From positions 1 through 64,000 of the IMG/VR virus record IMGVR_UViG_3300031787_007614: a stretch of 64,000 bases of DNA; one strand, written 5' to 3'. Shown here piece after piece: positions 19,108-47,926 of this stretch (positions are counted from its first letter, which is position 1; each line of letters opens with the position of its first letter). Under the pieces are notes generated by a model that did not search any database, was not told the origin of the DNA, and was given only the letters and a program-made list of their open reading frames with translations. Both the position numbers and the translations under genes were made by a program.

Positions 19108-19505
19108 GATACCTCGCTCCTGCCATCGCCAAGATCTCGCTTTTGAACATACATGCCGGAGTTCTTGATGGCTTGTTCTTGTTCCCATGTTTCCATCACA
19201 ACATGGCGGCATACATTTTGAAACCAACGGTCAACAATGTCCCCATCAGTGTCTGTAGGTTTCATCATATAGCCAGCCTTTACCAGTCGAGCCACAAAGA
19301 TTTCATTCCAATCCAACTCAAATGCACCTTGATGCAGATTGTCAGGATCCACATCCATACTGAGCACAGCCACGTAAGGTTCTCCCTTTTCAGTAGCAAG
19401 TTGTTTTTCAGTTTTAGCTGGTGGTTCGGCAACTCTAGGCTTAGTGACTTTTTCTACCACAGGTGGTGGTTTCTTTTGAGATTTTTTAAACCAATCAAAC
19501 ATCAA
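19104..19505 (-). CDS. Hypothetical protein
   Basis: FELDWN..FV..L...GY motif. Confidence 0.72.
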   Translation of the reverse strand: MMFDWFKKSQKKPPPVVEKVTKPRVAEPPAKTEKQLATEKGEPYVAVLSMDVDPDNLHQGAFELDWNEIFVARLVKAGYMMKPTDTDGDIVDRWFQNVCRHVVMETWEQEQAIKNSGMYVQKRDLGDGRSEVS

Positions 19506-19678: not shown

Positions 19679-20524
19679 TTATTTGCCCCATCCATTACCC
19701 CAGAGGTCCACATGCAATCGTGGGCTGTACCAATAACCTCGTTTGAGTGCTTCGTCGGCAACGTGAATTCTATTGCCATCATACACACTCACAACACCGC
19801 CAACAGGCATCACAAAAACTGGTCCGCTAAATCCACGGGTTCGATAGTCGTCAACTACTAGATCAAGCTCTTTGAAATCATCAATGTGACCAACAACAAA
19901 CTTCAAATAGGTAACACCGTGAGTTTCGTAATCCCAAATAATGTCAGGTTTGATAGCATCTTCATACTTTTCACCACTGACACTAAGTTTAGGACTTACT
20001 GAGAATGTGATCTCGCCAAACCATTCAGACAGATACTGTTTGAATTCTCTTGTGAGTTCTTGAGTACCATTGGTTTCAAATGTAATGTGTCGCAGTCCAC
20101 GTTCGTGCAACAGATTCAACAGTTCAGGATATGCACGTTGCCAACCTAGCAATGGCTCGCCACCTGTGATCACAAGATGCACTGAATTGCCGTTTGGTTG
20201 TTGCCAGTGGCCATTGGGCAACAGCGCAGCCATTTTGTCAACTAACTCTTGTGCTGTGTATGTGGGACTTAGATGTTTAAAGTCAGGATGCCAACTTGCA
20301 TACGAATCGCATCCTGTATTAACCAACGGGAGCTCTTCAAAAGTCTTGTAGAGATGAACGCTCTTTGCGACGTCATCTGCCTCAGTGCTCTTATCACCGG
20401 GTTGGCATCCAAATCCCGAACACGTAAAGTTGCAACCGAAGGTTCGTAAGAAGATAGAAGGAACTCCAATATAGCGTCCTTCGCCCTGAGCAGAATAAAA
20501 TAGTTCACTTACTTTTAATTTCAT
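19679..20524 (-). CDS. queE: 7-carboxy-7-deazaguanine synthase
   Basis: E.FYS.QGEG, FLR..GCN..C, CDS, ITGGEP, ETNG, SPK, RLH. Confidence 0.95.
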   Translation of the reverse strand: MKLKVSELFYSAQGEGRYIGVPSIFLRTFGCNFTCSGFGCQPGDKSTEADDVAKSVHLYKTFEELPLVNTGCDSYASWHPDFKHLSPTYTAQELVDKMAALLPNGHWQQPNGNSVHLVITGGEPLLGWQRAYPELLNLLHERGLRHITFETNGTQELTREFKQYLSEWFGEITFSVSPKLSVSGEKYEDAIKPDIIWDYETHGVTYLKFVVGHIDDFKELDLVVDDYRTRGFSGPVFVMPVGGVVSVYDGNRIHVADEALKRGYWYSPRLHVDLWGNGWGK

Positions 20525-24112: not shown

Positions 24113-24733
24113 TTATGCTTGATTGTCTGCAGCCAGCTTTTTCTGCAAGTGATTCAACAAGAAACCATACGCAGGCAGAATAACCAACAGACTCACAATG
24201 ATCTTACTGATTGAATTGTTGGTTGCAACAATGTGCCAGTTAGCAGCCATGAACTCATTTGCGCCACCAGCAAAGGCAGTAAAGAAGAACACATAGGTAT
24301 CAAAGAATGTGCTCACAATTGAACTCAATGCAGGAGCAATCCACCAAGTGGCGTACTTTTCACGAATGTATTGGAACACGTACACATCAAGCAAGTTGCT
24401 CACAAAGTATGCAACACCCGAGCCAAGACCAATGCGGAAAGCAACTGAGTCAGGAGCACCGCCCAGTTTGACCACTGCCATTGACACAATGATAGCAGGG
24501 ATGAATGCCAATGCAATCACCGCACGACCAGTTTGTTTGCCTAACATTCGCACAGTCAAGTCGGTCAACACAACCACTAGTGGGAATGTGAATGCGGCTG
24601 CTGCCAATGGTGCACCAAACACTGAGAATTTGAATTGCACAATGTAGTTGCTGATAGCAATGATAATGATATGTGCCAGCATGAGCTTGTAGGCCAATGC
24701 ACGGTCAACGCCACTTAAGATTCGATCTAACAT
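24113..24733 (-). CDS. yhhQ: preQ0/preQ1 transporter (VUT family)
   Basis: SN..VQ, FTFP....TDLTVR, RI..GS..AY, DT..FF. Confidence 0.9.
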   Translation of the reverse strand: MLDRILSGVDRALAYKLMLAHIIIIAISNYIVQFKFSVFGAPLAAAAFTFPLVVVLTDLTVRMLGKQTGRAVIALAFIPAIIVSMAVVKLGGAPDSVAFRIGLGSGVAYFVSNLLDVYVFQYIREKYATWWIAPALSSIVSTFFDTYVFFFTAFAGGANEFMAANWHIVATNNSISKIIVSLLVILPAYGFLLNHLQKKLAADNQA

Positions 24734-24750: not shown

Positions 24751-25257
24751 TTAAACGAATAGATCTTCCATCCACTCGCGATGGCCTTCTCTAAAAGCCA
24801 TATTGCTCTGTGTTTCGCGCACTTCCACACGATAGCACCAGAGACGCTCTGCTTCACCCGGTCCCCACAGGTCCGGAATGTAAACACCGTTCACATACTT
24901 GTACAGCATGTCTGCCAAGCCTTCACACCCTAAGCGTGGCAGGATTGTGAGTTTGGCCATTTTTTTCTCTTGCAAGAGCTTGTATGTCGCCAGCTCTGGA
25001 TCATCTGCAGACACCAGCAAGGTATGATCAAATTGATCTTCTAATGTCTTTTTAAGTTCTTTGAGACCGCCATAGTCAGCGGCCCAGTTACGCACATCCA
25101 GGTTGTCTGTGCCAAAGTAGAACTTCATTGAGAATGAGTAACCGTGAATTAGATTGCAGTGGCTGTCGGCACGCCATTGACGGTATGCGCAGGGAAAAGC
25201 ATCATGATACTCTTTGGTGCTGGTGTACTTGTATTGTACTGGTTGATTTGTTGCCAT
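24751..25257 (-). CDS. queD: 6-carboxytetrahydropterin synthase
   Basis: C..IHGY, DYG.LK, FDH, E.LA, V.ET. Confidence 0.88.
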   Translation of the reverse strand: MATNQPVQYKYTSTKEYHDAFPCAYRQWRADSHCNLIHGYSFSMKFYFGTDNLDVRNWAADYGGLKELKKTLEDQFDHTLLVSADDPELATYKLLQEKKMAKLTILPRLGCEGLADMLYKYVNGVYIPDLWGPGEAERLWCYRVEVRETQSNMAFREGHREWMEDLFV

Positions 25258-27491: not shown

Positions 27492-27898
27492 ACGCAAACT
27501 TCCTCTTTGAGATATCGTTTGAGTTCTTTGTCATTGGGTTCTACAGTATAGTTCTTCTTGAAAAAAATTTCATAACTATCACTGCCGTATTTGCCAATGC
27601 CGTACAAATCGGTAGCATCATCACCATTCCAAGTCATGTAGTCTTGACTCATTTTTTTCAATCTGGTGTATCTTACATTAGCCATACCTAATGGTGCAAT
27701 AATGCTTTTTACAAAATCTTCATCGGCTGCGATCAATGCTTCCGGCGTTGGGAACCAGTATAAAAATTCTGGCAAGGTTGTTTTTACAGATTTGCGGCCT
27801 GTTTGATTCAACATGATCACTCCAACCATGTGTTCCCATGAGTTAGAGATTTGTTGTTGAACCATCAGATCATCTCGTAATGCATGAAAAAATATCAT
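27488..27898 (-). CDS. HhH DNA glycosylase (MBD4/endonuclease III-like)
   Basis: W...V..I.LNQT, PLG....R, LYGIGKYG.DSY.IF. Confidence 0.85.
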   Translation of the reverse strand: MIFFHALRDDLMVQQQISNSWEHMVGVIMLNQTGRKSVKTTLPEFLYWFPTPEALIAADEDFVKSIIAPLGMANVRYTRLKKMSQDYMTWNGDDATDLYGIGKYGSDSYEIFFKKNYTVEPNDKELKRYLKEEVCV

Positions 27899-28587
27899 CG
27901 TGGTGCAAAGTCCTGTTGTAGTTTGATGTTGTCAAAGAATTCTTTTTTTACACTTTGGTCTGATTTAAACGCACCGTGTAAAACTGTTGTTTGGGTGAGA
28001 CTAGAGTGAGCCATGATACCGCGATTCTCACAACAACCATGGGTAGCTTGTATATAAACTGCAACATCCTTGGACCCGGTCGCGAATTCAATTTCGCGAG
28101 CAATATCCATACATAGCTCTTCTTGGAGAGTGCCTCGACGGGCACACCATTGCGCAATCCTGGTATACTTGGATAGACCAATAAGTTTGGGGCCAGCAAT
28201 GATTCCAATATAAGCCACACCCGTAACAGGCTGGTGATGATGCGAACACATGCTCTTAAGCTCTGAACGCACCACAAGCATACCTTCGTATGCTCCGTCC
28301 GTATCGTTTGGGAAAGCCGTAGCATTAGGGCTCGTCTCATAGCGACCAGCCATAATTTCATTGAAGTACATTTTTGCAAGGCGTTGCGCCGTGCCTTGTG
28401 AGTTAGGATCATTTTCCCTGTCAATTAGTAGTGTATCGAGAACTTGTTCAAATGCTTGAGTGGCCTCCATAATCAAATGTTCACGATCTGACTCAGCAAC
28501 ATAATCACTGATGTTGTCACCAGCCCAGAATCTCTTGCCGTCTGCCTTCATGCGTTCGCGAAGGACTTGTGATAGATTTTTTTCCAA
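27895..28587 (-). CDS. folE: GTP cyclohydrolase I
   Basis: SMCSHH, GLSK..R, LQE, H.C...RG; TTG start. Confidence 0.95.
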   Translation of the reverse strand: MEKNLSQVLRERMKADGKRFWAGDNISDYVAESDREHLIMEATQAFEQVLDTLLIDRENDPNSQGTAQRLAKMYFNEIMAGRYETSPNATAFPNDTDGAYEGMLVVRSELKSMCSHHHQPVTGVAYIGIIAGPKLIGLSKYTRIAQWCARRGTLQEELCMDIAREIEFATGSKDVAVYIQATHGCCENRGIMAHSSLTQTTVLHGAFKSDQSVKKEFFDNIKLQQDFAPR

Positions 28588-28654: not shown

Positions 28655-29326
28655 TCAATAGATTAATTGATTTGTGACCCATCTAATTAACCTATCTGCT
28701 ATAACTTGATGGCCCAGTTGATTGGGATGGCCACCACTACTGCTAAACAATTCATGTCCTCGTTCCATACTGGTAAATTTCACTCCCAGTATGTCAGCAC
28801 AAGTTACCTTGCCATTCTCATACATGTATCTAGTGTCTACTTCAGACCAAAATTTTATCTTTTGCCAGCCAGCAACAAATAGTGCATTTACCCTGGCTTC
28901 TCTGCAAATTCCTTGCACAGTCAAGATAGCAGTGTTCACAGCATAATCGTGTGCGGCATCGCTAGAAAAATACTTGTAATACAATTCGTTTAGATTGTGT
29001 TCTGTGGGATTGGCATTGGGCACAGCCACTCCGTTGGGTTGCAAATGTACCAGCCGATCATGCCAGGTCATGTGACGTTGTTGAGAAGTCAAAAACACCA
29101 ATACAGTGTACCTATTGTCTGGATTTTCTCTTTCAGTGCGGTACTTGTCTAAAAAGCCTTTGAGTTGCAACACTGTGTGAGGAATGCTGGATCCAGGTAC
29201 TGCAACATTATCCACACTGGTCACATTCAAACGGTCACCAATGATCTGGCCAAATGATTTTTCGCCTGGCTCAAGTTCTGCACCATATGCCCAACTGTCT
29301 CCTAAAATAGCAAGTCTATGAATCAT
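28655..29326 (-). CDS. SGNH/GDSL-like protein, paralog 3
   Basis: LGDSWAYG, N.A.PG, HPN..GH. Confidence 0.75.
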   Translation of the reverse strand: MIHRLAILGDSWAYGAELEPGEKSFGQIIGDRLNVTSVDNVAVPGSSIPHTVLQLKGFLDKYRTERENPDNRYTVLVFLTSQQRHMTWHDRLVHLQPNGVAVPNANPTEHNLNELYYKYFSSDAAHDYAVNTAILTVQGICREARVNALFVAGWQKIKFWSEVDTRYMYENGKVTCADILGVKFTSMERGHELFSSSGGHPNQLGHQVIADRLIRWVTNQLIY

Positions 29327-30317
29327 TCTTATCAAACTCTGTTTCCACGCGGCTGTACCAAGCATCTACGTCTCGTGCATATTCTCTCAACAGATTATAG
29401 TTGTTTTCAATGCGTGTGGACAACTGTTGTTTTAACTCACAACATTGTCCCACAGTCAATTGATCTAGCCTGTGTATTTCTTTCAGCACAGCATGTAATC
29501 TCTGATCTTCATCTGTGATGTTGTCATAACTGTGTGTGACAATGTCATCAAACACATCAAACCCCAGTTTACGCACTTCAGCAACCAGACCAGGAACTGC
29601 AAACCAAATTGGAATTTGTCTCAAGCCAAATGCCTTGAATGTTTTTTCACTGATAAAATGACTGCGCCACACGCCAACATCAGACTGACTGCCAGACTCT
29701 GCAACAATATTGAACATGCAGGTTTTGAACATGCTGTTGGTTTGGTCATGTTCTAGCCCAGTTGATCGTTCCACAATCCCATCCAACAACAGCGGCAATT
29801 CTCTTGGTATAATTTCTCGGTATTCGTTGGTAATGTTATTGGCACCCATGCTACCAAAGCTGAGTCTGACACTAGAGATGTCCGTCAACCCAGCAGCAAG
29901 TCTAGCACGACTTATACTGGGCCTACGAATCAAACACAAAAACTTTGTGTCAATGCCAGTAGCGGCACCAGACGCATCAAGACGATCAAACCAACCGGCA
30001 AAATTTGTTAGAAAAGTAGGTTGCGACAGTGCTTTGTACGAAAGGCCATCAACGTCAACCACAGCGTTGAATACCACCAGGATATCTTCAACTGGTAGTG
30101 TTTGCAAATACGTAATTAGATTGCCGATCACTTTGTCACACTGGCCTTCGGCTCTAAAATCTACTATGAGTTTTTTGCCGTGCAAGTCGGCTCGTGACAT
30201 TCCGCTGGTTGCTAAATCTTGTTCTACTCTAGGACCAGGGTTATCAAGATACCATTGTGCCATGTGCAATGCACCATAATGCACAAGATTGCGTCTTGAA
30301 AAACTAAACCACTTCAT
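29316..30317 (-). CDS. Putative glycosyltransferase, GT10-like paralog 3
   Basis: FNIVAES....ISEKTFK...P......LGFDVFDD...SYD. Confidence 0.6.
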   Translation of the reverse strand: MKWFSFSRRNLVHYGALHMAQWYLDNPGPRVEQDLATSGMSRADLHGKKLIVDFRAEGQCDKVIGNLITYLQTLPVEDILVVFNAVVDVDGLSYKALSQPTFLTNFAGWFDRLDASGAATGIDTKFLCLIRRPSISRARLAAGLTDISSVRLSFGSMGANNITNEYREIIPRELPLLLDGIVERSTGLEHDQTNSMFKTCMFNIVAESGSQSDVGVWRSHFISEKTFKAFGLRQIPIWFAVPGLVAEVRKLGFDVFDDIVTHSYDNITDEDQRLHAVLKEIHRLDQLTVGQCCELKQQLSTRIENNYNLLREYARDVDAWYSRVETEFDKNDS

Positions 30318-30910
30318 TCAACAATCTTGATATTTCTTAGATCAGGATATGGCACATACACAGGTTTAGGATTGTGTTCCTTGACACCTTGTAGCAATGC
30401 CACACCTTGAATGGCATCTTCAATACTGGGCTTGTAGTGATAGCCCACATGAAATGTCTTTTGGTCCTGCCAAGGTGCCACAGTCAAGTCTCTGCCATCA
30501 TAGCGTTGGCGCAATATGGTTTCATATGCTTTTTTATCATCCAACAATATAGCACCACCATGCCCAATAGCCAATGGCTTTGTATGTCCAAAACTCAAAC
30601 ACTGCATGGTGCCTGGCCGATACATATCCTGTTCCAATCTGCGAGCTGAGTCCCAAATTCTAGTGTAAGTGAATTCATACTCGCCTTCCCAATGCTGCCA
30701 GTCAATATCGTGATAGACATAGTGAATGCCTAACTTGTGCATGGTCATAGGAATGCTCAAATAAGTGTAAGGTGTAAACTTACAAGCTCGTACTCGATCA
30801 TATCGCAAGCAAAGTTCAATGGCATGTGTACAGCAATCAGTCATGATTGCATACGGTGCTCCTGTGAACTCTGCTAGTTCTTCTTCAAACTTTTTTATCT
30901 TGTCGAACAT
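30314..30910 (-). CDS. DegT/DnrJ-type PLP aminotransferase (short)
   Basis: FE..LA, T.A..L, DSA, SF...K.L..G.GG. Confidence 0.82.
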   Translation of the reverse strand: MFDKIKKFEEELAEFTGAPYAIMTDCCTHAIELCLRYDRVRACKFTPYTYLSIPMTMHKLGIHYVYHDIDWQHWEGEYEFTYTRIWDSARRLEQDMYRPGTMQCLSFGHTKPLAIGHGGAILLDDKKAYETILRQRYDGRDLTVAPWQDQKTFHVGYHYKPSIEDAIQGVALLQGVKEHNPKPVYVPYPDLRNIKIVE

Positions 30911-31847
30911 ACCAGTTCCATGCGTGTTGAATCATGTCATCTAGCTCATAATGACGCCATGCTCCTGCTATCAAATTAAACTTTTCTGAACTGGCAGTAA
31001 GTACAGGAGGGTCACCGGCTCTACGCTTGCCAACAACAACATTCAATGGTTGTTGTGTTTCATCAAGTGCGGCTTCAATAATGCCGTGATTGCTTGTGCC
31101 CATGCTGGAGCCAAGATTGTAAACGCCCGCAGGGATTTTGTGATATAACGCCAGAACGTGGGCCCGGGCAATATCATCCACATGCACGTAATCACGCACA
31201 CATGTACCATCCTCAGTGGGGAAATCGTTTCCGTTTAACACAAAATCTTTTTGATCCCTTATGCTTTCAAGCACTCTAGCAATAATATGTGTGGCACCAG
31301 GCTCTTGACCATGCCTGCCTTTGGGGTCTGCACCACATGCATTGAAATAGCGAAAACTAACATAGTCAAGACCGTATGCCCGGTGATAGCTTTCCAGCAT
31401 CATGTCAATCATCAGTTTAGATTCGCCATAAGGACTAACAGGTTCGTTGGGATCCACTTCATGTATGGGATTCATGACGGGCTCACCGTATGTGGCTGCT
31501 GAACTTGAAAACACCAATCTACAACGAGGCATGCTTTGTTTAACAATATCCAACAACTTCAATGTTTTGGCCACATTGTTGTTGTAGTATTCTGAAGGGT
31601 TCTGTACTGAAGGCCCCACAAGGCTGGTGCCAGCACAATGAATGATAGCATTGGGTTGCTTTTGTATGATCCAACTCAGTGCTACATCACTTGCAAAGTC
31701 CTGATACAAGAATCCATCGGGCACACCTCTAAGATGTTCAGGAGGCTGTCTGCGATCAATGCCGTATACTTCATGCCCGGCATCTTTCAATGCCAGCATG
31801 GTCTGACCACCAATGTACCCGGCTGATCCAGTTACAATTACAATCAT
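30885..31847 (-). CDS. galE: UDP-glucose 4-epimerase
   Basis: G.AGYIG, SSAA.YG, PYG.SK, RYFN, DGT.VRDY.HV.D. Confidence 0.93.
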   Translation of the reverse strand: MIVIVTGSAGYIGGQTMLALKDAGHEVYGIDRRQPPEHLRGVPDGFLYQDFASDVALSWIIQKQPNAIIHCAGTSLVGPSVQNPSEYYNNNVAKTLKLLDIVKQSMPRCRLVFSSSAATYGEPVMNPIHEVDPNEPVSPYGESKLMIDMMLESYHRAYGLDYVSFRYFNACGADPKGRHGQEPGATHIIARVLESIRDQKDFVLNGNDFPTEDGTCVRDYVHVDDIARAHVLALYHKIPAGVYNLGSSMGTSNHGIIEAALDETQQPLNVVVGKRRAGDPPVLTASSEKFNLIAGAWRHYELDDMIQHAWNWYVRQDKKV

Positions 31848-33058
31848 TTTTCAATCTTTACAACTTGATATTTTTCGTGAGAAGCGTGGTCACGATAGCG
31901 GTTGCCCGCTCTATTCCATTGCTCACCGCTACCACTAATAATATCAATAACGCGATCCACAGTGGCATTGTTCCAATCTGAAATAAGTCCCATGTTGTGG
32001 TGCGGCTCGCGAAGTAGGTTTTGCATTTTGTGATAAGCATCATCTATGCTCCAGGGAATATACAGTCTATTGGGATCGTTCGCGAAGGTTTCAGGAAAAC
32101 TGCGATACGCTGGATATAGCACATTGCATCCAACAGTATCGGCCTCTGATACGGTGTTTGAAACCCAATCTTGTAAAGCACAATTAAACAACACACGAGT
32201 ATTGTTGAGATGACTATAGTATTCATTCTTGCTTATATTGTCGTAGATCTTGAGCTTGCCTTCTGCCTCCATACGGAGGGCACGTTCAATATAGTCTGGA
32301 TTGTTGGATCGGAGAGGTCCGCCACTGTATATTGCAAACTCACACGGTTCGGAGGTAAGCTCACCATACATCTCAATAAGGTCCATGAAGAATCCAGGTT
32401 GTTTTTCCTGATCGAAACGGGCTGCAAAACCCACTCGTCTCGGTCTTTCAGCAAACGGCGTGATATTCTCTGTACCGCCAATTCTTTCCAGAACCTCTGA
32501 TTTTCCAAATGCCAGACCGGAAATGTTGTAGATTGGAGCAGTCCATCCAGCGATGCGCATGTGCGCGACCATTTCTTCATTGGTAGCCAATACTGCACCC
32601 CCCGAGAAAGCCACCATCTCATTGACCATTTGTTCATACAAGTTCATCCACTTTGCCATACCCCACACATGCACAAAGTCATCAGGATCAATGGCCTGTG
32701 CCAAACAACGAACATAAATCTTTGGACATTGTTCTTGTGGAATCTGATTCATGATGTAACCAAGGCTTTCAAAGCCCGGCTGGAACATGTCTTCAAAGTA
32801 GATCACATCGTCACCGGTAACATCGCCGTTCTTCATGAGCTGAACCAAGTTCATCATTTGGCTCATGGCAAAGAAACTGCGTCCGTGTGCGTCTAACACT
32901 TGACCTACTGAGATAGCTTGTGTGTTGTCAATTGTAGTGCCAGGCACATACACAACATCAAGACCTCTGCGGTCAAACACACGTCGATTCCACTCTGTGA
33001 GTTGTAGTGTGTAGCGGGCTTCATAACTTTCCAAGCCCATGTAAAATAGTTTTCTCAT
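31844..33058 (-). CDS. GT-B fold glycosyltransferase
   Basis: R.DQEK, N..SEA...G, YP..RSFPE. Confidence 0.7.
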   Translation of the reverse strand: MRKLFYMGLESYEARYTLQLTEWNRRVFDRRGLDVVYVPGTTIDNTQAISVGQVLDAHGRSFFAMSQMMNLVQLMKNGDVTGDDVIYFEDMFQPGFESLGYIMNQIPQEQCPKIYVRCLAQAIDPDDFVHVWGMAKWMNLYEQMVNEMVAFSGGAVLATNEEMVAHMRIAGWTAPIYNISGLAFGKSEVLERIGGTENITPFAERPRRVGFAARFDQEKQPGFFMDLIEMYGELTSEPCEFAIYSGGPLRSNNPDYIERALRMEAEGKLKIYDNISKNEYYSHLNNTRVLFNCALQDWVSNTVSEADTVGCNVLYPAYRSFPETFANDPNRLYIPWSIDDAYHKMQNLLREPHHNMGLISDWNNATVDRVIDIISGSGEQWNRAGNRYRDHASHEKYQVVKIEK

Positions 33059-33762
33059 TGATGTTCCTGTAAAAATTTTATCACTGTGGGTTTTAAATGT
33101 TCTGCAAACAGTACATTGCCTTTGAAGTTTGGATGAACATTGTTGAACAAATCTTGTGTTTCAAGTTGTTTCCAAAAAAAGAATGTGTCCCACACACTGT
33201 CTACCAAACTTGGTTCTGGATCGATGTTAGGGGTTTCGTGCATGAACCTGTGTATAACTTCAGCACCCCAACAATGATGCATATCAAATTCTGTGCCATC
33301 GTTTAGTATAACACAAACCGACCCATTATTAATAGTCATTCCGGCTTTGTCTGCTAGAAATTTTTGCCAGGAAAGATGTCCTATAGTAATGTTTGGATAA
33401 TTGCAATTAACAATGTCACTGTGTGCTCCAATTAACAACACAGGTTTATTTAAACTGTTGATTTTGTTCAGACAAAATTGATTGCATTCTTCCCAAATAT
33501 CTTTCCAGTCTGAACGCTGAATAAATTCTTTGAAAGTTAACTTAGTTGCATCTTGTAAACACAAAATAGGTTCATTATAGATCCAAATTACAGGTACATT
33601 AGGCGATCGTACCAATCTAATATAACTTCCCAACACACTAGTTCCAGATTGAGCATGGTCATAGAACTCAAACCCCCATTCCTTGGCAAGATTAGTTGTT
33701 GGTACATCCAGCGGCCAACTAGATGCCGCCCAACTTGGTCCAGTGTATGTAAATTTTTTCAT
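33055..33762 (-). CDS. SGNH/GDSL-like protein, paralog 4
   Basis: GPSW, A.SG.S, HPN..G; AT-rich. Confidence 0.55.
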   Translation of the reverse strand: MKKFTYTGPSWAASSWPLDVPTTNLAKEWGFEFYDHAQSGTSVLGSYIRLVRSPNVPVIWIYNEPILCLQDATKLTFKEFIQRSDWKDIWEECNQFCLNKINSLNKPVLLIGAHSDIVNCNYPNITIGHLSWQKFLADKAGMTINNGSVCVILNDGTEFDMHHCWGAEVIHRFMHETPNIDPEPSLVDSVWDTFFFWKQLETQDLFNNVHPNFKGNVLFAEHLKPTVIKFLQEHQ

Positions 33763-33769
33763 CAGCCAC

Positions 33770-33997
33770 TTAGTTACGAAATGCTCCGGCAAAGCGACGA
33801 GTGTCTTCGTCCCACATGTTCTTGGCATTCTTGCCTTGTGAAAACTTGTTGAACTGCTGCCAGGCATAACTCTTAAAGTTATACAAATCGGCTTCGTTGT
33901 AACGATAACCGTAGTCTTGGCAGAACTCCTGGAAGTGCTCAAGATGCTCAAAGAGCTCGGCCACACGTGGGTTAGATTTAATAGCGATTTTTGCCAT
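33770..33997 (-). CDS. Hypothetical protein
   Basis: RBS AGGA; FC..YGY.Y.E..LY. Confidence 0.7.
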   Translation of the reverse strand: MAKIAIKSNPRVAELFEHLEHFQEFCQDYGYRYNEADLYNFKSYAWQQFNKFSQGKNAKNMWDEDTRRFAGAFRN

Positions 33998-34008
33998 TTT
34001 GTTTCCTA

Positions 34009-34452
34009 TTAGATAGCAATGTTAATACTAGGGCGGTGAGTTTCATACTTAATAAGAGCTCCGTTTTCACCATCTTCGGAGACCTCAATCCAGACTGAGC
34101 GTTCTGGATACCGTGCGGCAATTTGCAAATACAAATCGTCTGACATCATTTCACATGACTTGTAGTCGAGTTGGACGGTTCCTGACTCGTAGAGTTTTTG
34201 TAGCCATCGTTTGAACTGGATGAATTCAATGTCTCGATCATTGTGTACAACATCAATCCACACCCGGAAGTGGAAGATATGACGGTGAGGAGTACCAAGG
34301 AAACTAACATCATACTCATCGCCCGTCTTAAGGGCTGGATCTGTTGCGGCTGCGGGGTAGAAGTGGATGCCTTCTTTTTGGAAGGTAACCCAGATTCTTC
34401 TTTGTGCGGCATATTTGATTCTTTCAATTTGTTCACGTTCATCTTGTATCAT
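34009..34452 (-). CDS. Second QueD-like T-fold protein (DpdL-type, putative CDG decarboxylase)
   Basis: H..P, LGTPHRHIF (LxxxHRHxF), RDIEF, SCE, V.EDGE. Confidence 0.72.
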   Translation of the reverse strand: MIQDEREQIERIKYAAQRRIWVTFQKEGIHFYPAAATDPALKTGDEYDVSFLGTPHRHIFHFRVWIDVVHNDRDIEFIQFKRWLQKLYESGTVQLDYKSCEMMSDDLYLQIAARYPERSVWIEVSEDGENGALIKYETHRPSINIAI

Positions 34453-34982
34453 TTGATTACTTCATCCTTTGTGTATTGGTCCCAAGAGGTAAATGTTTTT
34501 CTATCCAGCAAGTCATGCAGGCTGTGACACCATACTCCTGGGTTGGTTGCTTTGAAATCTTTGTCGTCTAGCTTGATAGTGGCATTGTAGCCTAGCAGTT
34601 TAATATAAGGCAGTTTCACTGAAATCATAGGAACAAATTGTGCTTGTTCGCACAAGCTACCTTCGCACAATCCTTCCACAGCACTTGAATCAAGATCCAA
34701 GGTACACCAGTATCCTCGATCCAGCCACGGTTGAATCATCTGTTCCCAGGCAGTCCAGACTCCAGCATCGTTCATAGTGGGGTTTGGAAAACTTTGATTG
34801 GCGCCAAAGTAGATGTGTGTGATTGGATTTTTACTCTTGTGGTCTGACTCACCCAGTTGCCACATGATTTGATCTGCATCTTGCAGTCCGACCACAAACA
34901 ATGTACGGTGACCGGCTACAGGACTGGCCTCAACTTCTGTACCTACAAAGAAATTGGTATCTTCGTGTCCGGGTCTATTCAT
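34449..34982 (-). CDS. Hypothetical protein coupled to the DpdL-like gene
   Basis: G.EVE....G..TLFV, HIYFGAN, K.DD..F..TNPGVW. Confidence 0.75.
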   Translation of the reverse strand: MNRPGHEDTNFFVGTEVEASPVAGHRTLFVVGLQDADQIMWQLGESDHKSKNPITHIYFGANQSFPNPTMNDAGVWTAWEQMIQPWLDRGYWCTLDLDSSAVEGLCEGSLCEQAQFVPMISVKLPYIKLLGYNATIKLDDKDFKATNPGVWCHSLHDLLDRKTFTSWDQYTKDEVIK

Positions 34983-35956
34983 AATGTAATCTCAAATAAG
35001 TTAGATAAATGTTTGTTGTTTGCTTTTTTGTCTGTCTTAGTTTTTTTCATGCCAGGGTGTACCTTTTTATTTTTAAATTCAGTAGCATCAAAAATTGATC
35101 TTGGCACAAAGAAACGATCCATAACTCCAGATACTTTGGTATAACTTTTACCAAGGTCATTGCCGTTAAAATCACACATCACATAATCACCTAACCCCAT
35201 CATAAGATTGATAATATCATTGCAAGTGTACCCAAATCGTTTACAATGTGTATCTCGCAGTTCGACCTGAACCACGGGTTGATACTTAGCAATGGTTTGT
35301 GTTGCACCTTCTAATGCAAACAGTTCAGAACCTTCAATATCAATCTTAATAAGATCAACATTTTCAAACCCAAAACTGTCAAGTGTGCGTTGCTCTGCAG
35401 TCTGTGTGGGATTGTTGGTAGTTTTGCCATCAAGTAACACAGCATCACCGCGACTGCACTCGTTGGTTTTTTGTTCCATGGTAATAATTCCAGCGACTTT
35501 ACCTAATGCATATTCAAAAAACTCAATCTCTCCTATCAAGTCAAGACTGGCAAATGTGCCATTGGGGAACTTGAACCAGCCATCTGGACGATCCGGCTGA
35601 TGTCTTACTTGTTGCAGTTTGCTATCCCAATAACGACCTTGAAGTTTTGCATTTTTTGCAATGTCTACATTGAGTTTCATTAGTTCCATGCTAGACTGCA
35701 TGGGCTCAAAGGTTTTTACATGTTGGCACCAGGTGGCATATTCAATTGCGTTCATGCCAATGTTGCCACCAATGTCAATTACAGTTCTTGCATTAGGTAG
35801 CAAGCGACGATTCATTACCAAATTGCGAGCCTGGTATGGACCGTTTTCTCTTGCCATACGCTGTTCATAAAGTTTGTCATTGTCCCAGATCCAATATTGC
35901 CTGCCTATGCGGTTTGTTACTAGTTTTTTGTTGTTGATATCAAATAGTTGTGCCAT
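34979..35956 (-). CDS. FkbM-family methyltransferase
   Basis: IDIGGNIG, FEP, TLD....DLIKIDIEG.E. Confidence 0.9.
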   Translation of the reverse strand: MAQLFDINNKKLVTNRIGRQYWIWDNDKLYEQRMARENGPYQARNLVMNRRLLPNARTVIDIGGNIGMNAIEYATWCQHVKTFEPMQSSMELMKLNVDIAKNAKLQGRYWDSKLQQVRHQPDRPDGWFKFPNGTFASLDLIGEIEFFEYALGKVAGIITMEQKTNECSRGDAVLLDGKTTNNPTQTAEQRTLDSFGFENVDLIKIDIEGSELFALEGATQTIAKYQPVVQVELRDTHCKRFGYTCNDIINLMMGLGDYVMCDFNGNDLGKSYTKVSGVMDRFFVPRSIFDATEFKNKKVHPGMKKTKTDKKANNKHLSNLFEITL

Positions 35957-36027
35957 GTTGTTGCCTTATAAAGAAATCCTGCATACATATTTAACAGTAT
36001 ACAGGATCACGAGAGAGAAAGCAAGAG

Positions 36028-36951
36028 TTACTTCTTCTTTTTCCAACGATCTTTGAAGGCATCAGGGCACCATCTGGTTGCAATTTCCATTGGATCATTT
36101 TGAGCCAATACATCTAATGCTTCAGGAGTCAAATCGATTAACTTGCGTTCTGTCGAACCAGGAGTTATATTGTAGAGACTCTGCTTTGTTTCTTCCCTAA
36201 CATCTTCAAAATTTGAATCAGGAAGATCTTCAAACAAGCAAATAAATTCCTTGTAGTAAGAATTACGATTCCATCTATTATAGGTTACTTCTTGTATTGT
36301 TGCATTGGTTACGTCAATGAATCTTCCGTCAACATACTGTAACACTCCGTCGTTATATTTTTCAAACGGACGTAAATTTTCGTTAGTAGTGGGACCACCG
36401 TGTGTTCTTTCTGACGTATGAACGGTCGTTGCTAAAGCATGATTCATTGCATATCTAGCCATGTCTTTAGGGCTGACTCTCCTGCTGTTTTCGATCACTT
36501 CTCGAATTAAATCTTTTTCAATTTGTTTAATAGGATATGTGTGCTCGCAATGCCATTCATTGGCAAAGTTATCACCTGATAAACCGGCCAACCCTAGCTC
36601 ATGCATTCTTCCAATGGCCTTGCCAGTGATTAGATCTGTACCGCTATTGCCGGTAGCATGTTGTAATCCCATAACATCTGAATGAAATTTTCTGATACCG
36701 CCATTACTCCAATGCACAGTGTCACCAGAAATGCTCGCCTGGTTATATTCAGGTCCTGCGGCAAAACCACCATTGAAAAATCTTTTGTAATAGCAATATT
36801 CTTTGAGTTCTTCGATTGTGCGGGCTTTAACATGATTAGCAAATTTTCGCAAGTCGCCGGCCATAAATGCTAATCTTACACCGGCCGTTATAGCCTTTAG
36901 AACGGCTTTGTTGGGATCTTGTGCAAGTAGTTTCTGAATATTCAAAACCAA
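36028..36951 (-). CDS. Hypothetical protein with EHxxP motif
   Basis: 307 aa; own promoter TTGACT-17-TATAGT at 36976-37004. Confidence 0.7.
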   Translation of the reverse strand: MVLNIQKLLAQDPNKAVLKAITAGVRLAFMAGDLRKFANHVKARTIEELKEYCYYKRFFNGGFAAGPEYNQASISGDTVHWSNGGIRKFHSDVMGLQHATGNSGTDLITGKAIGRMHELGLAGLSGDNFANEWHCEHTYPIKQIEKDLIREVIENSRRVSPKDMARYAMNHALATTVHTSERTHGGPTTNENLRPFEKYNDGVLQYVDGRFIDVTNATIQEVTYNRWNRNSYYKEFICLFEDLPDSNFEDVREETKQSLYNITPGSTERKLIDLTPEALDVLAQNDPMEIATRWCPDAFKDRWKKKK

Positions 36952-37026: not shown

Positions 37027-38565
37027 TTATATTTCTGTGCTCAGGTTGTCCAATTTGTCACTGTCCAAATCTACTTCGTCGGGCTCCGACTCACTGTCCT
37101 CATATTCAAACAATGCATTGAATTGAGTAGTAGCATTCACAGTCTTCTTGCCCTTAAAGCCTCGTGTGCCCACAATCTCCATCCAATATGTACTGTATTT
37201 CTCAACAATAGATTCGGCTTGTTCTCTTGTGGGTGCAGTGAAAATATCTTCCACAATGTCTTCAAAGTAAGCATAGTCACCAGTGCTACGACGCATCATG
37301 GCAGGATGTTCTCCTGCATCAAAACGTCTATTGGCTTCTTGTACTGCGGTCAAGTGCATCCAGACATTATGGCCCATGAGTAAAGCATATGAGAAACTGT
37401 CCCACGATGTCTTGCCTTCTTTACCATTTTTATTTAGGTCGCCTGGCTTGTAGATACAGATGTCTTTCATCTTGAGAAGTTTGCTTATGGGGCTATCTTC
37501 CCAACGTGGTACTACTCCATCGGCAACTATACTTGTACCCCAGGCACGTGTGTCAGTGGCGTACTTTTTGTCGTCGGCTGTAGGAGCCATGCGATACGAC
37601 CATTTTGAGTTGTTTTCAAAGACATTTTCAAAGTAGACCTGTCCGTTTGCTGTTGCAAGGAACGGACTGGCGCAGTCAAACGAGATTGTGAAGTTTGGAT
37701 TGACATATTTTCTCACGGCCCTTTGGATTACAGTTAATAAAACAGCCCACTCCAGTTTGGAGGTTCCCAAGAAGTGCATCCAATCATGGACACCTTCTTG
37801 AAGTAAATTGTCATAGCGCAATGCCACAATACGTTTGAGTACCAAGTGAACATCACACATGTTTTGTCCGCCCATGGCCCAGCCATTGAAATGCGTATCT
37901 GGATATTTTTGTGGATCGCAATAATCCTTCATCATCTGATACCATTCTTCTGCATGAGTATGGTTACCACCTTGCAACACATTCAAGAACTTGGTACCAC
38001 CGTTTGCCACACCCTTGCGATGTTTCATGAAGTATTCGTTGTTGTAATGTGTTGCCTTGACTGCCTCATCCAAAGTGCTAATGCCAGACTTCCATCCATT
38101 CTTTTCATTGATAACAAAACTTGGAATATCAAGTGTCATAGCATAGTCTGCTATACCATCTAACCAGGCTAGTGCTTGTTCTCGTTTGGCCTGAGCCTTG
38201 GCACAACCTGAGTTGGCTCGCCAATCACCTTCCCACACACCTTTAGCAATCTGGAAACCACCAGAGTCGCCCAGCATGATTGTGCCAGGCTCTCTGTTCC
38301 GTACCATGTCTTCTGACCAGTCTTGTTTAGCAAGATCGAGATTTGCATGCCCTCCAGAGTATAGGGACCAACGGTAAGGGAAAAGTGCTTTGGTAGAGTT
38401 AAGCCAATTAAGTTGCTCCATGTCACTAAGGCCCTGAGGCAATCTCGCCGGATCCACATATGGTTCATTCCTTTGCTTGCCTATGAACGTGGCATAGAAC
38501 CCGCTGATGGCCGGAAGGAACACAGCGTAGTCCGATTGCTTGGCAGTTAAGTCGTCTTGGGTCAT
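37027..38565 (-). CDS. TGT-fold guanine transglycosylase (DpdA-like)
   Basis: DSGGFQ, LDIP, VLQG, GWAMGG, HFLG, SFD; no CxCxxC zinc site seen. Confidence 0.85.
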   Translation of the reverse strand: MTQDDLTAKQSDYAVFLPAISGFYATFIGKQRNEPYVDPARLPQGLSDMEQLNWLNSTKALFPYRWSLYSGGHANLDLAKQDWSEDMVRNREPGTIMLGDSGGFQIAKGVWEGDWRANSGCAKAQAKREQALAWLDGIADYAMTLDIPSFVINEKNGWKSGISTLDEAVKATHYNNEYFMKHRKGVANGGTKFLNVLQGGNHTHAEEWYQMMKDYCDPQKYPDTHFNGWAMGGQNMCDVHLVLKRIVALRYDNLLQEGVHDWMHFLGTSKLEWAVLLTVIQRAVRKYVNPNFTISFDCASPFLATANGQVYFENVFENNSKWSYRMAPTADDKKYATDTRAWGTSIVADGVVPRWEDSPISKLLKMKDICIYKPGDLNKNGKEGKTSWDSFSYALLMGHNVWMHLTAVQEANRRFDAGEHPAMMRRSTGDYAYFEDIVEDIFTAPTREQAESIVEKYSTYWMEIVGTRGFKGKKTVNATTQFNALFEYEDSESEPDEVDLDSDKLDNLSTEI

Positions 38566-39320
38566 GCTTGGTAAAAGTTTACTGTTTCAAATAGTTCACA
38601 GTCCTCTTTATAGAAACTGCGAAGTCTATTTAGATAGTCTGGATTGCTTGAAAGTTTTTCATTGATACGATCTACTATATTTTGTTGTAACTCTGTAGTG
38701 AACAATTCTGTCACTGTGGGGTTGATCTTTTTAGTAATATTAAACACATTGGTAGGATCTTGATCTTCTGTTGTGAGATTAAACGGTGTACCAGTAAACT
38801 GTTCCATCATCTTGCCAAAGTTTTTGGCCAGCTCATCATCACACCGTAACCAAGTGATCTTAGAATGATCGATACCTTTAATAAAATCACATTGTGGTTG
38901 AGTGTGACTGTCGAACATTACAGTATCGAATATCATATCCCAATCAACATTGTTTATATGCAATGGATGTTCTGGATCCCATCCTTGCAGATACTGTGCT
39001 AGTCCAGTCACCCACCGATTGATAGGATCTCTAAGTATCACAGCATACTGGGCATTCTGTAAATGTTCTGACCATGTTGAAACGTTGATATTGTATTGTG
39101 TTGGAATATCTTCGTAAAATTTTTGTGTACGGTAGTTAAACAAATATCCCGGTGTATGATGCTTGGTCCAGCTGCTGGCATTTTTAGGAATGTGAACGTA
39201 AATCAAACATCTTGATGGATTATCTTTGACAATGCAATAGCTTTGTCCATTCCCAGCTTGGTTAGGTCCTGCCGGATCACCATCATCAACAAATTTAGGT
39301 CCTGTTGGTTTTTTAAACAT
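38562..39320 (-). CDS. Sulfotransferase-family protein
   Basis: HIPKNASS, LRDP..R, H..PQ, FY..D. Confidence 0.75.
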   Translation of the reverse strand: MFKKPTGPKFVDDGDPAGPNQAGNGQSYCIVKDNPSRCLIYVHIPKNASSWTKHHTPGYLFNYRTQKFYEDIPTQYNINVSTWSEHLQNAQYAVILRDPINRWVTGLAQYLQGWDPEHPLHINNVDWDMIFDTVMFDSHTQPQCDFIKGIDHSKITWLRCDDELAKNFGKMMEQFTGTPFNLTTEDQDPTNVFNITKKINPTVTELFTTELQQNIVDRINEKLSSNPDYLNRLRSFYKEDCELFETVNFYQA

Positions 39321-39321
39321 A

Positions 39322-40044
39322 TCACTTGCTTTGTGCTGGTAAGATATAATTGTAAACAGCAATGCCACTATCCACCGTGATCTTGGCAGCACCATCATCA
39401 CTGATACGAACGGTCTTGTCCCCAGTCAATGACAGGATACTCATGACTTGTTGAGCAGGCCACGACCAAGCACGTTTCAATTGACCATTTACACCTGGGT
39501 GGAACACAAAGTTACCAGCATGTGTGCTATGATCACCAAAGAAAAACTTCAAGTCTCCGTTTTCAGTCTTGGCCTGGAAATGTGGTTCTTCAGCATTGGC
39601 CTGTGCTTGCATACGCAGGCGTTGGATGGCAGCCACAGTGGGTTCAAATTCAATGTGCCAGTTTACACCTTTGAACTTGGGCGTCTTGAGTTTTTCAGTC
39701 ACAATGGCTTCGGCCATGAAACGATAGTTGTTTTGAAAATCGCCTGCGGCATTTTCAAACTTGATGCCATCTGGCTCGCCGCCTGCTCGGCGACTCAAGC
39801 TGAGTTTGGCGTTTTCTTTGTACTCCTGCAAGTTCAACAGAATTTTGATCTTGGCCAAGTTTGGCATGCCAAATGTGCCCACAAAGTCTGGATGTGGATT
39901 TTTGAATTCACCTTCCACAACCACGCTCATGTCTTCAGCAAGGCCTACAATTTGTGTGGCTTTGTCATCGCCTACAATCTTGATCAAATCAATGCAGCCA
40001 AGATCGTGTGTGTGTTGTACTAAGTCTAATAGATAATCTCTCAT
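39322..40044 (-). CDS. Putative DNA polymerase sliding clamp
   Basis: 240 aa, beta-rich, C-terminal Y.YILP, next to the polymerase. Confidence 0.6.
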   Translation of the reverse strand: MRDYLLDLVQHTHDLGCIDLIKIVGDDKATQIVGLAEDMSVVVEGEFKNPHPDFVGTFGMPNLAKIKILLNLQEYKENAKLSLSRRAGGEPDGIKFENAAGDFQNNYRFMAEAIVTEKLKTPKFKGVNWHIEFEPTVAAIQRLRMQAQANAEEPHFQAKTENGDLKFFFGDHSTHAGNFVFHPGVNGQLKRAWSWPAQQVMSILSLTGDKTVRISDDGAAKITVDSGIAVYNYILPAQSK

Positions 40045-47489: not shown

Positions 47490-47926
47490 GCTCTTTCTTC
47501 TTTCAGGTAACTTCTCAGCATCCAGCCATGCTTTTGATGAGCATCGATGCGTTCAGCAATGAAGTTAGCAATACCTTGTTGGTTTTCTTCAGTTGCTACT
47601 TGGAAGACTTGATTGAGAAGATCCAACATTTGGCCGTTGTTGGCCAAGAGTTCTTCTAGCATGAGTCGGGCACGTGGAATTTTTGTTTGGCCCTGTATTT
47701 TTGTTAATTCTACAAATCGTTCAAAACTACCAGGAGCATAGTCGCCCAGGGCACGTATGTATTCTGCTGTGGGATCTGTAGCACCATAAACATCGTCATG
47801 GATTGCGTCAAAGAAAGCGTGAAGCTGGCCAAAGTCTGGGCCTTCAACGTTCCAGTGGAACTGTTTGGCTTTGAGAGCAAAAGCCTCCTCAGTTGCCAGG
47901 AGTGTTTTTAAAGCGTCCGCTAACAT
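47486..47926 (-). CDS. dps: Dps/ferritin-like protein
   Basis: HWNV.G..F..LH, D..AE, K..WML. Confidence 0.92.
   Translation of the reverse strand: MLADALKTLLATEEAFALKAKQFHWNVEGPDFGQLHAFFDAIHDDVYGATDPTAEYIRALGDYAPGSFERFVELTKIQGQTKIPRARLMLEELLANNGQMLDLLNQVFQVATEENQQGIANFIAERIDAHQKHGWMLRSYLKEERA

Follow-up and report, generated by a model that had tools for sequence, protein, structure and literature searches.

A GT4-like glycosyltransferase linked to phage deazaguanine genes suggests, but does not prove, a sugar-decorated guanine substitute

Some phages replace guanine in their DNA with 7-deazaguanine, one of the closest known cases for this comparison being the phiST type (Cui et al. 2023, PMC10516641), in which FolE, QueD and QueE are found together with DpdL, a proposed 7-carboxy-7-deazaguanine (CDG) decarboxylase, and the transglycosylase DpdA3, and in which the DNA has been proven to carry plain 7-deazaguanine (dDG). 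In a separate group of systems, exemplified by the T4 alpha- and beta-glucosyltransferases (AGT and BGT) and by the phage GT-B enzymes that glycosylate 5-hmC (bioRxiv 10.1101/2023.12.21.572611), sugars are added to modified bases in DNA. All glycosylated DNA bases known to us are pyrimidines: glucosyl- and arabinosyl-hmC, base J and glycosylated 5-hydroxycytosine. However, sugars are added to free 7-deazapurines in secondary metabolism, as when HuiG adds GlcNAc in huimycin biosynthesis (bioRxiv 10.64898/2026.04.15.718813), and to queuosine in vertebrate tRNA. Here, we examine a locus in a jumbo phage in which a predicted glycosyltransferase (GT) lies beside deazaguanine genes.

We focused on a 64,000-nucleotide window (positions 1 to 64,000 of IMG/VR record IMGVR_UViG_3300031787_007614), in which a first-pass annotation had described a largely ATGA-coupled run of an unknown 177-aa gene, a DpdL-like gene, a 75-aa gene, an SGNH-like gene, a GT-B gene and galE, and had inferred that a sugar may be added to a modified base in DNA. 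The gene run that it described is real: all six ORFs are present on the minus strand (Table 1), and four junctions are ATGA overlaps (galE/GT, GT/next ORF, DpdL/177-aa and 177-aa/FkbM). Furthermore, the genes for the GT, the 75-aa protein, DpdL, the 177-aa protein and GalE recur at 50-99% identity in 71-80 of 80 related IMG/VR loci, and are therefore not chance ORFs. Some corrections were needed. When read from its GTG, the ORF labelled SGNH-like overlaps the 75-aa gene by about 200 nt, making the downstream ATG its most likely start, and it gave no Pfam or PHROG hit at E<=0.01, so that the SGNH label rests only on a GPS...VHPN motif read by eye. In addition, the first-pass annotation missed a DpdA gene, which is what makes a DNA target plausible.

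Table 1. Features of the deazaguanine region, with positions in the window and occurrence in 80 related IMG/VR loci.
Position	Strand	Length (aa)	Assignment	Related loci (of 80)
19679-20524	-		QueE (7-carboxy-7-deazaguanine synthase)	
24751-25257	-		QueD (CPH4 synthase)	
27895-28587	-		FolE (GTP cyclohydrolase I), first step of 7-deazaguanine synthesis	
30314-30910	-	198	Mini-DegT, PLP sugar-aminotransferase-like, about half the usual length; core in this clade	71
30885-31847	-	320	UDP-glucose 4-epimerase (GalE); core in this phage clade only	77
31844-33058	-	404	GT4-like GT-B glycosyltransferase (fold from predicted structure)	
33055-33762 (33966 from GTG)	-	235 from ATG at 33762 (303 from GTG at 33966)	Accessory ORF, formerly SGNH-like; clade-restricted insert	4
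33770-33997	-	75	Conserved small protein between DpdL and the GT, specific to this clade	79 (54-99% identity)
34009-34452	-	147	DpdL homologue, QueD-like T-fold, proposed 7-carboxy-7-deazaguanine decarboxylase	
34449-34982	-	177	Conserved protein of unknown fold, travels with the module in some lineages	
34979-35956	-		FkbM-family methyltransferase; accessory insert	2
36028-36951	-	307	Unknown protein; accessory insert	2
37027-38565	-	512	Long DpdA/TGT-like transglycosylase	
38562-39401 (likely start ATG at 39320)	-		Sulfotransferase-like protein; accessory insert	7 (about 30% identity)

To explore the identity of the 404-aa protein, we generated a structural model using AlphaFold 2 (pLDDT 95.1, pTM 0.93), which revealed a GT-B fold with two Rossmann-like domains and the donor site in the C-terminal domain. 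Foldseek searches of the PDB returned MshA, BshA, PimA, SenB and the cyanobacterial tetrahydrobiopterin glucosyltransferase BGluT at about 1e-11, and VIA-align gave Z 24-27 over 315-345 residues to MshA, BshA, PglH, PimA and sucrose-phosphate synthase (including Z 26.7 with 344 residues aligned, and Z 26 to MshA, BshA and sucrose-phosphate synthase). A sequence profile for the GT matched PglH/WlaC in the PDB at 7e-4 over an R-x-D-x-E-K-x-P motif. Across 55 members, only 28-56% identical to the window's GT, R214, E218, K219 and P221 are invariant and Q296, D297 and E305 nearly invariant, making the enzyme appear catalytically intact; equating D297...E305 with the EX7E-like acidic pair is our own reading. 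The window protein itself gives no Pfam hit, while its 64%-identical BUCT-ZZ01 orthologue passes the Glyco_trans_1_4 and Glycos_transf_1 cut-offs, and P0190, from one of the GT lineages, carries both in precomputed annotation. A special likeness to T4 AGT or BGT was not supported, as neither was among the top 50 entries by Foldseek or VIA-align, and the nearest structures are mostly GT4 enzymes acting on small molecules or lipid-linked acceptors, not DNA glucosyltransferases.

The 147-aa protein carries LGTPHRHIF at residues 52-60, fitting the DpdL signature LxxxHRHxF that replaces CxxxHGH (PMC10516641). It is 33% identical to phiST CGPG_00067 (4e-16) and 57% identical to ACP17 gp125 (9e-47), and matches phrog_17812 at 7e-36. 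Its conserved residues are the same in GT-linked and DpdA3-linked DpdLs, so the same intermediate is expected in both kinds of system. The 512-aa protein has a D100-S101-G102-G103-x-Q105 motif that is invariant with ACP17 gp123, X1 WEM34307 (annotated as a queuine tRNA-ribosyltransferase), BUCT-ZZ01, BCSR5 and PA5oct gp168; a sequence profile aligned across this motif to residues 99-297 of the Z. mobilis TGT at 5e-4, consistent with the TGT catalytic motif and TIM-barrel core, and the ESM atlas placed it at 0.93 to a TGT-like cluster, with relatives labelled TGT or DpdA. The Pfam TGT model (PF01702) matched nothing in the whole genome, but it also gave no match for the accepted phiST DpdA3 or in the ACP17, PA5oct and BUCT-ZZ01 genomes, implying that this test is insensitive for phage DpdAs.

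The remaining deazaguanine genes were assigned by similar means. FolE matches Pfam GTP_cyclohydroI at 2.8e-39; QueD matches PTPS at 5e-16 and is 52% identical to ACP17 QueD; and QueE is 47% identical to BUCT-ZZ01 QueE (4e-84), although it hits several NCBIfam QueE models only below their cut-offs. QueC is absent, the only hit scoring 16.4 bits, below the cut-off. GalE is confirmed by the TIGR01179 equivalog (282.7 bits against a cut-off of 262.3) and by Pfam Epimerase (3e-54). The mini-DegT matches DegT_DnrJ_EryC1 at 2.4e-16 and aligns to about residues 30-210 of 375-aa DegT structures, FkbM matches Methyltransf_21 at 1e-16 and exceeds the TIGR01444 cut-off, and the sulfotransferase-like protein matches Sulfotransfer_2 at 1.8e-4 (22.1 bits, just at the cut-off). 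No Pfam or PHROG family was found for the 75-aa and 307-aa proteins. Homologues of the 177-aa protein are found as ACP17 gp122, next to its DpdA, in two of the GT loci (between GT and DpdL in L092, and in L108), and in PA5oct, 27 kb from its DpdL, together with more than 5900 metagenomic relatives. Its AlphaFold 2 model (pLDDT 74) is alpha/beta with no significant fold match, and an atlas hint of a 2H phosphoesterase is weak (0.80), with no HxT/S motifs present.

Since the first-pass annotation had named a lack of linkage between the GT and dpd genes in other phages as grounds for rejecting its idea, we sought to determine how consistently they are found together. In all 108 loci with at least 4 kb of flank, which fall into 13 GT clusters at 60% identity, a DpdL gene lay within 10 kb of the GT, usually adjacent, with a median gap per cluster of 0-2.7 kb, so this objection fails decisively. 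QueE is present in 13 of 13 clusters, FolE in 12 and QueD in 10, whereas GalE is present in only 2. Members only 30-36% identical to the window's GT still sit in such clusters, and six cultured phage lineages show the same pairing: PA5oct, ACP17, X1/BUDD, BCSR5, Phosso and BUCT-ZZ01. A DpdA is present in every GT lineage examined, being of the long DSGGxQ type in some, lying 170 kb away in Phosso, and in the P0190-like group taking the form of a ~300-aa TGT-like gene beside the GT in 12 of 12 loci. By contrast, five DpdL phages with phiST-type DpdA3 have no such GT anywhere in their genomes. The GT is the best-conserved protein of the module, at 76-97% identity against 54-83% for DpdA, and the family comprises 747 protein clusters at 50% identity. 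No alternative acceptor pathway was found, as the complete 364-kb genome has no ThyA-family hydroxymethylase (Thymidylat_synt) and no Tet_JBP match.

Taken together, the gene identities, motifs, linkage and (from predicted structures) folds are what this analysis establishes, while the acceptor, the sugar, the end product and the activities of the enzymes, including decarboxylation by DpdL, which is unproven even for phiST DpdL, are inferred. In the explanation that we favour, which we hold to be about as likely as not, the region belongs to a larger 7-deazaguanine DNA-modification module (about 19.7-38.6 kb) in which FolE, QueD and QueE would make 7-carboxy-7-deazaguanine, the pathway, lacking QueC, would not go on to preQ0, DpdL would convert the intermediate, by analogy with phiST, to 7-deazaguanine, and the DpdA-type transglycosylase would swap this base for guanine in phage DNA. 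The new element, a GT4-like GT-B enzyme that is genetically locked to DpdL and would be nucleotide-sugar-dependent, is proposed to put a hexose on the DpdL product, with the translationally coupled GalE supplying UDP-galactose, or glucose, in this clade. Glycosylation could happen on the free base before DpdA inserts it or on the base once in DNA; either way, virion DNA would carry a glycosyl-7-deazaguanine, and the FkbM, sulfotransferase-like and SGNH-like proteins would be optional tailoring enzymes. Thus, the interpretation of the first-pass annotation is partly supported, with a glycosylated deazaguanine remaining an inference, for which no mass-spectrometry data exist in any GT-carrying phage; nothing shows that the acceptor is a base in DNA rather than a free base, and co-localisation shows a shared pathway, not the reaction. 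Moreover, 7-deazaguanine has no hydroxyl group, so a sugar would have to go on N2, on C7 as a C-glycoside, or on a different DpdL product, and no retaining GT4 enzyme is known to us that does this on DNA. GalE and the mini-DegT, being confined to this clade, say nothing about the family's usual donor. Two observations on cultured phages are nevertheless in line with the proposal: PA5oct DNA resists G-containing restriction sites and is attacked by nucleases that sense hypermodified bases, its chemistry being unknown (PMC12191111), and ACP17 dpdL plus dpdA alone gave no dDG in E. coli (PMC10516641). There is also a chemical precedent in HuiG, which glycosylates a free 7-deazapurine in huimycin biosynthesis.

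Of the alternatives, the one that survives best, though we consider it unlikely, is that the GT acts only on a free small molecule (7-deazaguanine, CDG or a pterin intermediate) and the glycoside never enters DNA, which would carry plain dDG; the glycoside could be a storage or export form, a way of diverting host queuosine or pterin precursors, or a toxic nucleoside-like metabolite. This is suggested by the small-molecule GT4 enzymes, including BGluT, among the best structural matches, by the HuiG precedent, and by the prediction of Cui et al. that DpdL acts on the free base. Against it, a DpdA accompanies the GT in every lineage examined, the module sits among replication genes such as PolB, the clamp and an exonuclease, and phiST-type phages make dDG without any GT, so the GT is not needed for plain dDG. 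It is less likely still that the GT is an accessory or structural partner for base exchange by the non-DpdA3 transglycosylases, for example in DNA binding or base delivery, with sugar transfer lost or irrelevant, much as bacterial DpdA needs DpdB. The GT does occur with long or short non-DpdA3 DpdAs and never with phiST-type DpdA3, and ACP17 DpdA plus DpdL was inactive alone, but the donor-binding residues typical of active GT4 enzymes are conserved and a GalE is coupled to the GT in this clade; a structure prediction of a GT-DpdA complex gave no answer, and so no support, although this is not evidence against. Finally, that the GT, GalE, mini-DegT, FkbM, sulfotransferase-like and SGNH-like genes are an ordinary glycan cassette acting on host surface polysaccharide or virion proteins and merely lying beside the deazaguanine genes, as suggested by the window's richness in sugar-enzyme families (GalE, a DegT-like protein, FkbM, an RfaE-like adenylyltransferase and a KedN5-like radical SAM methylase), is very unlikely, since the GT-DpdL pairing survives in 13 of 13 clusters and in unrelated phage backbones, most of which have no other sugar gene nearby, and the other sugar genes are clade-specific or accessory.

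If phages carrying this GT do replace guanine with a glycosylated 7-deazaguanine, a reading that we put at slightly less than even, this would be the first sugar-bearing purine-type base in any DNA and a new class of DNA hypermodification, made by a widespread module of six components (FolE, QueD, QueE, DpdL, GT and DpdA) with thousands of metagenomic copies of the GT family, and followed in some phages by methyl, sulfo or acyl tailoring of the sugar. We found no paper describing such a base. It could explain why ACP17 DpdL plus DpdA failed in E. coli, would give a candidate for the unidentified G modification of the therapeutic-candidate phage PA5oct that END-type nucleases sense, and would supply a new enzyme for labelling DNA, and at least six cultured phages carry the module, making the prediction testable at once. 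Even if the sugar never reaches DNA, the strict GT-DpdL pairing defines an undescribed branch of 7-deazapurine metabolism that is abundant in environmental viromes.

Compared with the phiST-type system, the locus shares FolE, QueD and QueE without QueC, a DpdL with the same signature and conserved residues, a DpdA-family transglycosylase and a position next to replication genes, but its DpdA is of another, long DSGGxQ subfamily, and a GT4-like glycosyltransferase and, in several lineages, a 177-aa protein, both lacking in phiST-type phages, are added. Like the T4 glucosyltransferases and the 5-hmC GT-B enzymes, the GT is a phage-encoded GT-B enzyme inside a DNA-modification cluster; some of those clusters also have epimerases beside them, and the published 5-hmC enzymes likewise resemble PglH, the best sequence-profile hit here, although no hydroxymethyl-pyrimidine pathway was found in this genome and the presumed acceptor in this case is a purine analogue without a hydroxyl group. 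In huimycin biosynthesis, a glycosyltransferase encoded with FolE/QueD/QueE-type genes also acts on a 7-deazaguanine-derived base, but the product is a secondary metabolite of an actinomycete, the cluster has no transglycosylase, and the pathway starts from preQ0, which needs QueC. In vertebrate tRNA, where mannosyl- and galactosyl-queuosine are formed and GTDC1/QTMAN is a GT4-family enzyme, the acceptor is the cyclopentenediol of queuosine, and GTDC1 was not among the top 30 Swiss-Prot structural matches to the GT; what the two share is that a 7-deazaguanine base inserted into a nucleic acid by a TGT-family enzyme is, or in the phage would be, glycosylated.

The window forms the first 64 kb of a complete 364,404-bp virus record with direct terminal repeats, that is, a jumbo phage. 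While no near-identical DNA was found among GenBank phages, thousands of copies of its proteins at 70-96% identity occur in metagenomes. From about 15 to 47 kb nearly all genes lie on the minus strand, and these include genes for PolB, a 5'-3' exonuclease and a clamp-like protein, with a ferritin-like protein and a radical SAM/SPASM-like protein lying just beyond the replication genes. Within this region, the first-pass annotation had described a largely ATGA-coupled run of six genes, encoding an unknown 177-aa protein, a DpdL-like protein, a 75-aa protein, an SGNH-like protein, a 404-aa GT-B enzyme and GalE. This observation held, since all six open reading frames are present at the stated coordinates (30885-34982) and four junctions are ATGA overlaps. 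However, the SGNH-like gene has no HMM support in Pfam or PHROG and, when read as a 303-aa ORF from a GTG, it overlaps the 75-aa gene; it more likely starts at the ATG at 33762, giving 235 aa.

Features discussed in the text, with positions in the window unless another sequence is named
Sequence	Position	Strand	Feature
Window	18631-19227 and 21241-23223	minus	RfaE-domain-II-like sugar-phosphate adenylyl/cytidylyltransferase and KedN5-family B12-dependent radical SAM C-methyltransferase
Window	19679-20524		QueE
Window	24113-24733	minus	Vut_1/YhhQ-family protein
Window	24751-25257		QueD
Window; locus L005	27488-27898; 9388-9921	minus (window)	Short HhH-GPD (EndoIII/Ogg-like) protein beside FolE; gene annotated 'glycosylase' in Phosso
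Window	27895-28587		FolE
Window	29316-30317	minus	333-aa multi-copy ORF
Window	e.g. 10331-11446, 13634-14593 and 50370-51497		Paralogues of the 333-aa ORF, with ten more across the genome
Window	30314-30910	minus	198-aa 'mini-DegT'
Window	30885-31847		GalE
Window	31844-33058		404-aa predicted GT4-like GT-B glycosyltransferase (GT)
Window	34009-34452		DpdL homologue
Window	34979-36951 and 38562-39401	minus	FkbM methyltransferase, 307-aa unknown protein and sulfotransferase-like gene
Window	37027-38565		512-aa DpdA/TGT-like protein
Window	47486-47986 and 48366-49469	minus and plus	Ferritin-like protein and radical SAM/SPASM-like protein
L002 (Synechococcus phage BUCT-ZZ01)	3093-3554		Gene annotated xanthine-guanine phosphoribosyltransferase
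L008 (Vibrio phage Bakedbeans)	9212-10363		gp176, 383-aa annotated protein with DpdL as its C-terminal third

We next examined the identity of each of these genes. GalE scores above the TIGR01179 equivalog cut-off. The 404-aa protein itself has no hit in Pfam, PHROG or NCBIfam, but the evidence that it is a glycosyltransferase is strong. An AlphaFold model built from 55 diverse homologues is very confident (pLDDT 95, pTM 0.93) and has a GT-B fold closest to GT4 enzymes, including MshA, BshA, PimA, PglH, SenB, LmbT, sucrose-phosphate synthase and the pterin glucosyltransferase BGluT (Foldseek about 1e-11; structural alignment Z up to 26.7), with the same picture in Swiss-Prot models. A family profile hits PglH/WlaC over the R-x-D-x-E-K-x-P motif, within the family R214, E218, K219 and P221 are invariant and D297 and E305 nearly so, and the 64%-identical orthologue in Synechococcus phage BUCT-ZZ01 passes the Pfam GT4 models. 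T4 AGT and BGT were not among the top 50 structural matches. We also considered whether the 404-aa protein might itself be the missing DpdA3, but rejected this possibility, as it shows no similarity to phiST DpdA3 and its predicted fold is GT-B. The DpdL homologue carries LGTPHRHIF, which fits the LxxxHRHxF signature defined by Cui et al. 2023 (PMC10516641), and is 33% identical to phiST DpdL and 57% identical to ACP17 DpdL. The 177-aa and 75-aa proteins matched no family. A model of the 177-aa protein (pLDDT 74) gave no significant structural match, an ESM-atlas hint of a 2H phosphoesterase (0.80) is not supported by motifs, and phiST CGPG_00066 is not its homologue.

In addition to these genes, FolE, QueD and QueE are present, whereas QueC is absent above its cut-off. 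The first-pass annotation did not record a transglycosylase, and the Pfam TGT model finds none in the genome. However, the Pfam TGT and DpdA models, together with a DpdA3 profile, miss accepted phage DpdAs, and we relied instead on motif and profile evidence and on the ESM atlas. By these criteria the 512-aa protein is DpdA-like: it shares an invariant DSGGxQ motif with ACP17 gp123, BUCT-ZZ01, BCSR5, PA5oct gp168 and X1 WEM34307, the last of which is annotated as queuine tRNA-ribosyltransferase; a profile of these six proteins hits solved TGT structures over that motif at 5e-4; and the ESM atlas places the protein with TGT- and DpdA-labelled clusters. Thus, as judged from gene content, the phage has a complete route to 7-carboxy-7-deazaguanine, a DpdL and a DpdA. 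Next to QueD lies a gene for a Vut_1/YhhQ-family protein (Pfam 2e-21), a family that includes queuosine-precursor transporters, which hints at precursor uptake during infection. QueE is flanked by the RfaE-domain-II-like and KedN5-family genes, and Xanthomonas phage X1 also has an adenylyl/cytidyltransferase-family gene about 8 kb from its DpdL. In BUCT-ZZ01, a gene annotated xanthine-guanine phosphoribosyltransferase lies between QueE and QueD in the deazaguanine cluster, suggesting that some of these phages might also make a deazaguanine nucleotide.

To determine the extent to which the GT is associated with DpdL, we used tblastn with both proteins and found the two genes adjacent or within 3 kb of each other in the cultured phages BUCT-ZZ01, the PA5oct group, X1/BUDD, ACP17, BCSR5 and Phosso. 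The GT family has 747 clusters at 50% identity, and the contexts of members only 30-44% identical to the window's GT again show QueD, QueE, FolE and DpdL beside the GT. We then pooled 180 GT-bearing loci from IMG/VR, GenBank and assemblies, of which 108 had at least 4 kb on both sides and fell into 13 clusters at 60% identity. DpdL was present within the flanks in 108 of 108 of these loci, with a median GT-DpdL gap per cluster of 0-2.7 kb, while QueE was present in 13 of 13 clusters, FolE in 12 and QueD in 10.

A DpdA-type gene was likewise present in every lineage that could be examined. Six clusters possess the long type, whereas in Phosso the gene lies 170 kb away. The remaining group includes two complete mid-sized phages (L102 and L108, IMG/VR records of 80,131 and 91,004 bp with terminal repeats), which carry QueD-QueE-FolE-DpdL-GT followed by a TGT-like gene of ~300 aa. 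In this group, the ~300-aa gene was found beside the GT in 12 of 12 loci and resembles DpdA/TGT by ESM-atlas features (0.93) and by structure (TM 0.65-0.73), but is missed by the long-DpdA, DpdA3 and Pfam DpdA profiles. It is probably a further DpdA subfamily. An hhalign comparison of this family with DpdA alignments was uninformative, since even the control of DpdA3 against long DpdA reached only 15% probability. Prediction of a complex between the GT and DpdA gave no answer, which is not evidence either way.

To distinguish core from accessory genes in this clade, we compared 80 close relatives in which the GT is 76-100% identical. The conserved order is PolB, a 334-aa protein, a clamp-like 240-aa protein, DpdA, the 177-aa protein, DpdL, the 75-aa protein, GT, GalE, mini-DegT, FolE, HIT and QueD, with the GT being the best-conserved protein of the set. 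By contrast, the SGNH-like gene is found in 4 of 80 loci, FkbM in 2, the 307-aa gene in 2, the sulfotransferase-like gene in 7, a GDSL-like 236-aa gene in 5 and the 333-aa ORF in 12 at this position, identifying these as inserts. The FkbM, 307-aa and sulfotransferase-like genes, which are inserted between core genes of the module and occur only in the window's nearest relatives, could encode tailoring enzymes for a sugar or be unrelated morons. The 333-aa ORF has no Pfam or PHROG hit and belongs to a family with 14 copies in the 364-kb genome, raising the possibility that it is a mobile or homing element. The mini-DegT aligns to only about residues 30-210 of 375-aa sugar aminotransferases. We considered whether it might be a gene broken by the 333-aa ORF, but the 198-aa form is conserved in 71 of 80 relatives, most of which lack that ORF, so it is not a recent disruption. 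Although GalE and the mini-DegT are core in this clade, they occur in only 2 and 1 of the 13 GT clusters, respectively. The short HhH-GPD gene beside FolE is present in 8 of 80 relatives, and Phosso has a gene annotated 'glycosylase' directly upstream of its DpdL. These genes are of interest because host END nucleases sense hypermodified DNA through an inactive EndoIII domain (PMC12191111).

Taken together, the linkage indicates with high confidence that the GT works in the 7-deazaguanine pathway, downstream of or alongside DpdL. We found no other plausible acceptor pathway (hmC or hmU) in the genome. The most economical reading is that the GT glycosylates the DpdL product and that the DNA ends up with a glycosyl-7-deazaguanine. 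While the gene assignments, motifs and linkage come directly from the analysis, the acceptor, the sugar and the end product are inferred. The proposal of the first-pass annotation, in which a sugar may be added to a modified base in DNA, is partly supported. The main chemical difficulty is that 7-deazaguanine has no hydroxyl group. The sugar might be added to the free base, for which HuiG in huimycin and the small-molecule GT4 relatives provide precedents (and the non-DpdA3 transglycosylases might accept a bulkier base), or to the base already in DNA, for which the precedent is 5-hmC glycosylation, where phage GT-B enzymes also resemble PglH. Indirect support comes from two published observations: PA5oct has an unidentified G modification and is sensed by END nucleases (PMC12191111), and ACP17 DpdL plus DpdA alone did not give dDG in E. 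coli (PMC10516641).

Other readings are less well supported. The GT might generate a glycoside that stays a free metabolite, or it might play a non-catalytic helper role for DpdA. Only an unrelated glycan cassette is close to excluded. Full-text literature searches found no paper that links a glycosyltransferase to DpdL or reports a glycosylated deazaguanine in DNA, and Cui et al. mention no GT.

The closest point of comparison is the phiST type of system. Five DpdL phages with phiST-type DpdA3 (phiST, D479, Ahp1, RHph_I1_18 and Bakedbeans) have no member of the GT family anywhere in their genomes, and phiST DNA has plain dDG replacing all G (PMC10516641). In Bakedbeans, where DpdA3 lies 7 kb away, the position of DpdL within gp176 could reflect a fusion or a mis-called start. 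DpdL itself shows no group-specific residues between the two kinds of system. The new element relative to the phiST type is the GT that accompanies DpdL, with a realistic chance that the system described here makes a new class of DNA base.
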